Shown: positions 39,001 through 42,000 of the stretch, in pieces
Layout: each line of letters opens with the position of its first letter
How positions within the stretch are numbered: position 1 is the first letter of the stretch
Program-made: the position numbers and the translations under genes
Origin: Macrostomum lignano
Taxonomy: Eukaryota
Assembly (NCBI GenBank): GCA_002269645.1
Contig: NIVC01000033.1
Location: 361,335-425,334 of the forward strand
Length of the DNA: 64,000 nt
Direction: 5' to 3'
Notes under the pieces: model-generated
Database searches by the model: none
What the model was told of the DNA's origin: nothing
The model's input: only the letters and a program-made list of their open reading frames with translations

Positions 39001-42000
39001 CTACTTATGTAGCTTAAACTTAGCGGATTAATTGCAAAGCTCTTCATCGCCTAGGGAATTAATTAAACGCACATTTCCAGGTGATTTTGGCCAGCACATT
39101 CGAGATAGTTTGGACGGTCTTTCACCCGAATTCGTCATTCGGTCTCAGCGTTCTCCGAGCGCTGAGGCTGTTACGAATTTTTAAAGTTACTAGGCAAGTC
39201 TTGCAAATCTGATCCCAGACCGTCTGCGGGTCCTGTCCCCCAGTCTGTTAGGCGTCTTCGTGTTGATGTCATTGTGTTCATCGTGCTCTTTTCGTTGATT
39301 TTCTCCGCTATGTCTCGTGCATTTAGTAACAACTTTCGCTTCTTCACGTTTCAATCACAATATTAAATGCTTCTTTTGTTATTTTTGTTGACCTTGCATG
39401 CACCCAGCCAGAATTAGACTTAGTTAATATGGCGCATATATAATCAAAATTACATTCATAATTAACGCTGCCTCTTGTACACGTGACAAACATAAAGTCA
39501 TTTGTACTGCCAGCCAGTAGAACAAACTTAAAACCGCACATGCTTGAGAACTGAATTTACATAAGTGTGTATGCCTTGTATATGTCTGTGTGTTTTTTTA
39601 ACACAACTACTGCATTATACTCACCCTCTCAAAGCAAAGCCCAAGCTTTATTGTTCTGTTTAGCATGACTTGCTTAATCTCAATCGCGCTTATCATTCCC
39701 TTTGTTATACTGTTCGCACATGCAGTTACTTTGGACTACTTTTAGGCTAGGCAATTCCCCAGATGCTTTCCAAGGAAAACTGCTTTGCAGTCCGCGCTTT
39801 CTTTGATCAATTTCTACAGGTTGTACTTGCCAGCTTGTTTGAGGTTATCTGGCAGAACATGCACGGTGGCCAGTCATTTGGCTTCAGTGCCCTGAGGAGT
39901 ATCCGGCTTTTGAGAATTTTTAAGGTCACAAGGTACTAAAAGAATAATTAGTGCTCCCCAGTTTTCTAATCGCTTCATAAGTCAGAAAAGTGAGCCTAAA
40001 GGAGAGAGATGATCCTGCCAAATTGGCGAGAACTGTATAGCTGATGAGGCGAAATCTCACACAGCACCATGCCATACACTGAATATGAGCATGCCACGTG
40101 CACTGTTTCCTCTTGTTTGTGCTATTTAATCGAACCGTTATACTTTCTTACTCTTAACGGAAATTGGCATTGCTTCTGCTATTTTGCTATTTGATGGCGT
40201 TTAATTTATCTATTGGGCTTCCTCTCAGCATTGGGCAGAAGGTCGCAACAGTTAAATTGCTTTGTTCAGAAGATGAGTTGTTCTTTTAAAGCATGCGCAC
40301 ACACCAACACTTCTCAGTAGGCTCAGCTGATAATCTTTCTCAACATGAAAACATGACGGCTTCGCTCCGTGCGCGAAGTTATCGACTGCTTGCCCCGTCA
40401 CCCGAGTAGGCGCTCTGTGCCGATGCATTAATGCGCTCATGAAACCGAGAACCTCGCGCCCTCGGTCGCGCAACCGTCTCCACTATCTTCCTTTCCCTCT
40501 TCCTCTGAGGCGTGCCGTCTATTTCCCATGAGACTCAAAAGGGAACACAGTTTTCCTCTAATAAGATTACCTTCCCCAACTACTTTCGCCAGAGAGAGGC
40601 TTCGAGCAGTTCTGCGTTGCAGAAGGGAGGCTGCAAAATGGGTGGTAGAAAACCAATAGAAGGCGGTTAGTTCCACCGCAGAAAAACGACTCTCTCTCTA
40701 TTGAAATTAGAAGCCATCAATGAGGGAGAAAGACGACACGGAGAGCACTGAAACAAGATCGAATGCTTAGTTGATGCTCCGTATGTCTTCTACGGAAACT
40801 TTAGCTGTAATTCTTCATTAGAAGTTTGTTCACAGGCCAACTGGGAACTTTTTGAATCAGTAGAATTTTATAAACATCTTACAAGCCTTTTACTCTTATG
40901 CTAACCCAGATTGAGAGTTGCAAGGTTGCAGCTGCGTACTGTATCGATACTTACGAAGTGCTTTGTAACACACAGCTGAATCCCACCGCTGTTACCAGGT
41001 GATCATTGCCAGTGCGCTAGAGATAGCCTGGCAGTTTTATAGACGCGACGCATCATTCGGTGTCAGCGCGCTGCGAGCGCTGCGCTTGCTGCGGGCTTTC
41101 AAGGTCACTAGGTTAGTCCGGATCGGACATGCGGGATTCAAAATATTAGAATCGAAAATTTGCTTTTTTTCCACCAACGCTACACTTAAACAAGGTGACG
41201 GGAATGGCCTGATGTCCAATGTTGCTATCTAAGCTGCAGAAGGCTAATGTTTCATGCGATAGATAGATAGAAGACAATTCATTCTGAAAGAATCCGACTG
41301 GATGCGCGTGCATTAGCAGGTCAGCTTAGAGATTAACAGATTAGCAGTTGTAAGCCTTGGGGGTTGGAATATTTTTAAATCCCAATAAGGAACAGTTTGT
41401 AATTTATTAATCATTCTCCTATGCTTTAATTTTTTAATCCCTCCAAATATAGAATAGGAAAGTACTATAGGAGTCGGCATTAGGTGTCCACGGCTATCCA
41501 GACCAATTCCCTGTCAAGGTGGACATGCTCAATTGGCGCTTATCCTCTGGGGTTTTCGTTCTCGCGAATTCTGCAGAACCTCAGCCAACCTGCACTCACA
41601 ATAAATTTATTATCGTTGTAAAAGCATCAACGATGCCACGCAGTCTCTAACCGCAGGTCCACCGCTTCATTGCAATTTCAGATACTGGTCTTCACTGCGC
41701 AACCTCGTCATTTCTCTATTGAGCTCGATGAGGTCCATCATCTCCCTGTTGTTCCTGCTGTTCTTGTTCATCCTCATCTTTGCACTGCTCGGCATGCAGC
41801 TGTTTGGCGGAGAGTGAGTGCTGACGAATCGATTCTGCCCCATTCTGCTGTGCACACACAGCACTGGTGCACTCGCTCACACAGGGTGTACATCGGCACT
41901 GACTTTTCAATCGTCAGGCCTGTGCACTGTGTGTGCCCAGGGGGTTGACCCTAATGGTAGCGAATCTCACGACAACCCTCCAAGCCCCAAAAGGATGTGG

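Follow-up and report, generated by a model that had tools for sequence, protein, structure and literature searches.

A cluster of three homologous exons, termed A, B and C in the following, was found in a gene for a Cav2-type alpha-1 subunit of the flatworm Macrostomum lignano. The gene lies in the 64,000-nt stretch of DNA analyzed here (contig NIVC01000033.1:361335-425334, forward strand), which is called the window and to which all positions refer; all exons and open reading frames (ORFs) described below are on the + strand. The locus is likely a tandem-duplicated cluster of mutually exclusive exons, in which the split between A and B is ancestral and was later sorted into the two Cav2 paralogues of parasitic flatworms. 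Each exon encodes the outer part of the S3 segment (IIS3b), a 7-residue S3-S4 loop and the charge-bearing S4 segment of voltage-sensor domain II (VSD II).

From approximately 30.4 kb to the end of the window, domains I to III and the start of domain IV of the alpha-1 subunit are encoded. Over its full length, the segment around the cluster aligns with domain II of the solved structures of human Cav2.1, Cav2.2 and Cav2.3, with E values of 3e-86 to 8e-81 compared to approximately 1e-50 for Cav1. The I-II linker carries a beta-subunit binding motif, and the pore loops of domains I, II and III contain glutamates within the motifs TMEGW, TGEDW and TGEGW, respectively; the pore of domain IV falls beyond the window. 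The best channel matches were 64-70% identical and spread across annelids, nemerteans, molluscs and flatworms, so that the channel sequence by itself was ambiguous as to species. Judged by these features, the host gene of the cluster is a Cav2 (non-L-type high-voltage-activated) alpha-1 gene.

The cluster is framed by two constitutive exons. The upstream exon (38719-38831, IIS2-IIS3a), located by tblastn to Cav2 proteins, maps to Cav2.2 residues from 515 and ends on a full codon (...FNIFDCT) at the donor ACT/GTAAGT, where the slash marks the exon boundary. Exon A (39081-39193) follows the acceptor ttccag/GTGATT and ends in the donor ACTAG/GCAAGT, a GC-type 5' splice site (39194-39199) that was read directly and included in the frame check. 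The rest of the A-B intron, which measures 626 nt as a whole, extends from 39200 to 39819 and contains no U12 signals. Exon B (39820-39932; acceptor ttctacag/GTTGTA, donor ACAAG/GTACTA) is separated by an intron of 1066 nt (39933-40998) from exon C (40999-41111; acceptor gttaccag/GTGATC, donor ACTAG/GTTAGT). The downstream constitutive exon (41682-41813; acceptor ttcag/A, donor GA/GTGAGT) encodes the end of IIS4 to IIS5 and begins with A/TACTGG. All three variants are 113 nt long, start in phase 0 and end in phase 2, so that their terminal AG and the A at 41682 form an arginine codon and the junction reads Arg-Tyr-Trp. Every copy has an acceptor (cag/G) and a donor (AG/GCAAGT, AG/GTACTA or AG/GTTAGT) of its own, as judged by consensus.

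The S3-S4 loops differ (TVFHPNS in A, QNMHGGQ in B and the basic, RRD-containing QFYRRDA in C), whereas one S4 ladder, R-x-x-R-x-x-R-x-x-K-x-x-R, is common to all three. Variation is located in the outer S3, the loop and the non-charge residues of S4, including the flanks SVLRAL, SALRSI and SALRAL and the alternatives IFK and AFK. A repeat search recovered the three copies in register and gap-free, at spacings of 739 and 1179 nt. Ungapped nucleotide identity between the copies amounts to 65, 74 and 63 of the 113 positions at a chance match rate of 0.256, corresponding to P <= 4e-5 once all offsets within the 2.85-kb region are corrected for, and amino acid identity is 58-63%, likewise without gaps. 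An earlier note on this DNA had described three exons of the same length and phase between the junctions at 38831 and 41682, with these loops and an identical S4 charge pattern; direct reading and translation of the sequence agree with it on each of these points.

Since 113 is not a multiple of three, the reading frame is retained only by inclusion of a single exon of the cluster. The joins of zero, two and three exons all break the frame, mostly with a stop within a few codons. When A and B are joined, the stop lies 24 codons into B, and in the joins A+C and B+C a TGA is formed just within the first bases of C. No GT donor that would keep the frame was found near exon A, and the GC donor is thus required. 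Both the frameshift rule and the AG/GCAAGT donor, which the earlier note had proposed, were confirmed in this way.

Two common explanations for mutually exclusive splicing could be discarded. Steric hindrance between neighboring splice sites is ruled out, as the introns that separate the variants (626 and 1066 nt) are far too long. An incompatibility of U2 and U12 splice sites is ruled out for this cluster as well, because the donors GCAAGT, GTACTA, GTTAGT and GTAAGT are not of the U12 type. In Caenorhabditis elegans, mutually exclusive exons have weaker splice sites, GC donors are enriched around them, and 14 of the 19 clusters with exon lengths not divisible by three depend at least partly on nonsense-mediated decay (NMD) (PMC4165533). 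Exon A with its GC donor and exon B with its poor positions +4 to +6 fit this pattern. Exon choice may therefore be made through weak splice sites (the GC donor of A, GTACTA of B) that would be read by cell-specific trans-acting factors, with NMD as a possible backstop that would remove the products of multiple inclusion and of skipping.

Alternatively, the exon could be selected by competing RNA base-pairing of the Dscam/14-3-3 type, in which a docking site, placed in either the first or the last intron, would pair with one of the selectors beside the variants. Several weak inverted repeats do share one arm in the last intron (41556-41603), which pairs with 40015-40033, 39161-39179 and 39831-39846, and a 10-bp complement to the GC donor of exon A is located at 39667-39676. 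However, when 30-nt windows of the first and last introns were scanned against both internal introns in this single species, the best joint duplex energies remained within the range of shuffled sequences, of which 18% and 33% reached equal or better values. We consider this type of selection rather unlikely, and a choice through weak sites is preferred.

The substitution pattern of the exons provides evidence for a function of all three copies. The proportions of synonymous differences (pS) are 0.90, 0.67 and 0.83 for the pairs A-B, A-C and B-C, at which synonymous sites are saturated, compared to nonsynonymous proportions (pN) of 0.28, 0.24 and 0.33 (Fisher P of 4e-8, 1e-4 and 1e-6, respectively). 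In every pair, pN is approximately threefold below pS, the ratio of nonsynonymous to synonymous divergence (dN/dS) of C versus A is 0.17, and none of the copies has acquired stops, indels or defective splice sites. In the 50 nt flanking each exon, identity between the copies is at random level, and the flanking introns are unalignable. Together with the saturated synonymous sites, this indicates that the duplications are old. An assembly artefact or a recent duplication is ruled out, given copies that differ at approximately 40% of their bases and flanks that cannot be aligned. By these measures, purifying selection has acted on each of the three copies ever since they diverged. The earlier note had named neutral decay of the other exons in orthologues as a refuting outcome; what was found favors function instead.

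The parasitic flatworms provide a second line of evidence. Their genomes contain two Cav2 genes, and those of Schistosoma were cloned under the names Cav2A and Cav2B (PMC3194816). The neodermatan Cav2 matches in our comparison split into type-1 and type-2 genes by their IIS3-S4 sequence. The type-1 form is close to exon A, which is itself nearest to this and to the general animal form. The type-2 genes, found in Taenia, Echinococcus, Fasciola, Schistosoma and Cryptocotyle, carry VV(L/I)AS(L/F)FE(V/I)(I/V)WQ and a loop-S4 signature that together are nearly exon B. The motif SALRSIR, otherwise unseen, is common to exon B and the type-2 genes, and the same applies to VVxAS.FE..WQ. At the protein level, exon B and the Taenia exon share 79% identity. 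In a bootstrapped neighbor-joining tree of the exons, B grouped with the type-2 sequences in 93% of the replicates, while A, B and C never formed one group in 500 replicates. No counterpart of exon C was found among the sequences of other animals that were compared. The loci of Taenia (type-2) and Paragonimus (type-1) each contain a single IIS3-S4 exon with the same boundaries, and no credible relics of a lost second exon were detected in their introns. Based on this sequence comparison, exon B is the counterpart of the sole, fixed IIS3-S4 exon of one of the two parasite Cav2 paralogues, and one M. lignano gene probably does by splicing what two genes do in the parasites.

The order of events was addressed with a gene tree of 831 columns from constitutive exons, constructed by neighbor-joining on fast-evolving parasite sequences. 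Here, M. lignano was placed inside the flatworms (98%) but outside the clade of type-1 and type-2 genes (100% bootstrap). If this topology is right, the gene was duplicated after Macrostomum had branched off, and the exon duplication that gave rise to A and B took place before. The S4 segment of domain I is also encoded by two alternative exons of this gene, IS4a (approximately 32543-32635) and IS4b (approximately 33778-33880). IS4a is the form fixed in type-1 genes, whereas IS4b is the generic form and is fixed in type-2 genes. Each parasite paralogue has thus kept one exon from each of the two clusters, since type-1 genes combine an IS4a-like with an A-type exon and type-2 genes an IS4b-like with a B-type exon. 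The flatworm ancestor may accordingly be pictured with an A/B pair alongside an older IS4a/IS4b pair. After the gene duplication toward Neodermata, one paralogue would have kept IS4a and the A-type exon and the other IS4b and the B-type exon, and exon C would be a later addition in the Macrostomum lineage.

Several points weigh against this interpretation. The evidence is genomic sequence, and the part of the GenBank record that was inspected has no annotation for the gene. The exon tree is built on 38 residues and leaves A and C without a settled placement. Long-branch attraction could have joined type-1 and type-2 falsely, as the gene tree is a distance tree of fast-evolving parasites. For exon C, which has no orthologue, the case consists of dN/dS, the intact frame and the intact splice sites. 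Functional differences between the isoforms are extrapolated from vertebrate and fly channels. Finally, the Cav2 survey in M. lignano covered this one locus.

The last point also leaves room for the idea that exon B was copied in from a separate type-2 Cav2 gene of the M. lignano lineage by gene conversion or exon transfer, all the more so in a genome known for recent large-scale duplications. However, B stands in register in the tandem array and is flanked by introns unlike those of the other copies, the same gene also has an IS4a/IS4b pair that parallels both paralogues, and its constitutive exons branch outside both of them. We therefore regard such a transfer as improbable. Even a little less probable is that just one exon, most likely A as the generic form, is spliced in, with B and C as functionless relics of old duplications. 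In favor of this view, no alternative for this segment appears among the annotated isoforms of ten further animal lineages, and exon C has no known orthologue. Yet despite saturated pS, the frames are open, the lengths are exactly 113 nt, the AG/GY sites are intact and pN is threefold lower than pS; moreover, a relic could not have kept 79% protein identity to the Taenia exon across so deep a split. Least probable of all is that the cluster mainly serves dosage control, with regulated double inclusion leading to stop-containing, degraded transcripts and hence less channel: each double inclusion does put a stop inside the second exon and NMD-coupled products are documented for such clusters (PMC4165533), but the protein-level purifying selection on all three copies and the conservation of B with the type-2 genes would be left unexplained.

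Within the preferred reading of an ancestral A/B pair that was later sorted into paralogues, a further step can be proposed tentatively. The distant splice choices might be coordinated per transcript, IS4a with A and IS4b with B, with C as a third, lineage-specific voltage sensor II, such that one gene would make both parasite channel types. We consider this possible, though on balance doubtful.

With regard to channel function, the isoforms A, B and C are probably all made. Each choice exchanges the outer S3 half of VSD II together with the S3-S4 loop and all of the charge-bearing S4 part, while the five gating charges remain fixed. In the structures of Cav2.2 and Cav2.3, VSD II is held in the resting position, and neutralization of its charges in Cav2.3 leaves activation in place but shifts the voltage dependence by approximately 9 mV and alters closed-state inactivation (PMC9889812). 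By analogy, the three exons most likely tune the voltage dependence of activation and inactivation as well as closed-state inactivation, and the proline-containing, glycine-rich and basic loops together with the changes in the S4 flanks are the likely determinants. Of the two functional roles that the earlier note had suggested, tunable gating is a reasonable inference in view of the reported modulatory role of Cav2 VSD II (PMC9889812). The other, a difference in toxin or drug sensitivity, found no support; the splice-dependent toxin effect described in the cited work concerns the S3-S4 loops of domains III and IV of Cav2.1 (PMC11828482).

Mutually exclusive splicing of voltage-sensor exons is already known to diversify four-domain channels. 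The closest relative is the IS4A/IS4B pair of the Drosophila Cav2 gene cacophony, the exchange of which changes activation voltage and channel localization (PMC11828482). Both cases concern tandem homologous exons of the same channel family that replace an S4 segment, and the flatworm gene has an IS4 pair as well. The fly exons, however, belong to domain I rather than II, form a pair rather than a triplet and measure 99 nt, a multiple of three, so that the frame does not enforce their exclusivity. The two clusters also differ in distribution. Alternatives of the a- and b-type at IS4 were found in annotated isoforms of Lineus (nemertean), Pomacea and Haliotis (gastropods) and Antedon (crinoid), and the cacophony-type pair looks bilaterian-wide in these sequences, although the fly study calls it absent from vertebrates (PMC11828482). 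In contrast to this widespread pair, the IIS3-S4 cluster was seen only in M. lignano: up to 15 annotated isoforms sampled from each of ten non-Macrostomum clusters contained no alternative at IIS3-S4. As far as this isoform sampling goes, the domain II cluster looks flatworm-specific.

The G1/G2/G3 exons of the cockroach sodium channel (para/BgNav) are likewise a mutually exclusive triplet for the S3-S4 segment of a four-domain channel and give isoforms that differ in gating (Tan et al. 2002, cited in PMC9741552). They differ from the present cluster in that they belong to a sodium channel, to domain III (IIIS3-S4) and to an arthropod. Tan et al. 2002 reportedly described pharmacological differences between these isoforms. 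One of the cockroach exons carries a stop codon, whereas all three M. lignano exons are open.

Sorting of alternative exons into paralogues has a precedent in vertebrate L-type channels, where CACNA1C/D keep three duplicated-exon events, while from every pair one exon was retained by CACNA1F and the opposite one by CACNA1S (PMC9741552). There, too, the sorting followed gene duplication and involved several events in concert (PMC9741552). The genes are of the Cav1 family, the exons are different ones, and both states are documented by transcripts, whereas the unsorted state of the flatworms is derived from one genome. Exons 9 and 10 of C. elegans let-2 and the other clusters with lengths not divisible by three share the frame-enforced exclusivity with NMD, the weak sites and a GC donor in one of the flanking introns (PMC4165533), but let-2 is an unrelated (collagen) gene of another phylum. 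In mammalian Cav2.1 and Cav2.2, splicing also alters S3-S4 linkers, and an influence on pharmacology, for instance on the sensitivity to agatoxin, has been reported (PMC11828482). There, very short cassette exons are inserted into the loops IIIS3-S4 and IVS3-S4 instead of domain II, without a swap of the whole segment. In the literature searched, we found no report of voltage-sensor exon substitution at the domain II S3-S4 of Cav2, or in flatworms. New here are the location of the cluster at the domain II S3-S4 of Cav2, its three copies, its occurrence in an unannotated gene of an early-branching flatworm and the tie to the parasite paralogues.

The same gene has further pairs of homologous exons. 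One pair encodes the pore loop and S6 of domain II: IIPa (42305-42428) has ILTSEDW and an FGR in S6, and IIPb (43107-43224) contains ILTGEDW, the canonical form, and FGN. Each of the two exons ends in the U12-type donor GTATCCTT, and a perfect U12 branch-site motif, TTCCTTAAC, is located at 43509-43517, approximately 47 nt before the next acceptor (cag/ACACG). A U12 donor on IIPa is incompatible with the U2-type acceptor of IIPb, and the exclusivity of this pair could thus be imposed by the two spliceosomes. Such a mechanism resembles the one proposed for JNK1 and differs from the A/B/C cluster, which has no U12 donors. Another pair of homologous exons encodes the pore loop of domain III (approximately 60418-60564 and 60806-60955), the second of which is nearer to all other Cav2 proteins.

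Homologue searches yielded no M. lignano Cav2 protein among their matches, which were apparently limited to proteins of approximately 0.9-1.75 times the query length; the top identity was 82% for a query of 120 amino acids and at most approximately 75% for two longer queries. A single-exon query (38283-38522) also returned no M. lignano representative. The public record was inspected for 39820-63722 (NIVC01000033.1:401154-425056), that is, for 23.9 kb from exon B on, and a transposon pol is the sole gene called there. Within this stretch of the GenBank record, the Cav2 gene is unannotated and its exons, including B and C, are part of no annotated gene, which accounts for the missing protein in all searches. 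An Rfam scan of the whole window gave zero matches.

Repetitive elements are frequent in the window. The large intron before domain III holds an intact Gypsy-type pol ORF of 1300 amino acids (49820-53719) with reverse transcriptase (RT), RNase H and integrase domains. This ORF is part of a young family in M. lignano, of which no fewer than 13 nearly identical copies are annotated; the 13 named members of its 90%-identity cluster are all from M. lignano. The exact locus of the element lies on contig NIVC01000033.1 of assembly GCA_002269645.1, which matches the window at 100% identity over 23.9 kb and thereby settles the species. Two adjoining retroelement-like units are found at 300-7200, with RT-like ORFs at 347-1363 and 4206-6014 and ORFs resembling the C-terminus of tyrosine recombinases at 1641-2573 and 6220-7182; judged by eye from the ORF translations, this layout suggests DIRS/Ngaro-type elements. 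Microsatellites of great length occur at sites including 45828-48351, 11378-12535 and 8848-9250, some of them inside channel introns; (GTCT)n extends over 2.5 kb and 1.2 kb, and (AGAT)n over 0.4 kb. Many 20-50-nt minisatellites are present as well. An interstitial telomere-type run at 23438-23517 comprises 13 AACCCT repeats. Directly after the exon closing domain II, a 28-nt minisatellite with 21 copies is located at 43710-44302 (+), and the coding region of the II-III linker (43.65-45.7 kb) is short.

In the structures, VSD II of Cav2 is in the resting state and dispensable for opening (PMC9889812). Three natural variants in which the differences are confined to S3b, the loop and those S4 residues that carry no gating charge would be a ready-made experiment on the function of this domain. 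If the splice choices at IS4 and IIS3-S4 were coordinated, the gene would preserve, as a living snapshot, the condition that preceded the sorting of alternative exons into paralogues, and it would offer a natural isoform series for the role of the unusual, resting-state VSD II. The tie of exon B and of the IS4 pair to the parasite genes clearly shows, for an invertebrate group, how alternative exons can stand in for gene duplicates and vice versa, and it may help to explain the difference between the two Cav2 channels of schistosomes and tapeworms.

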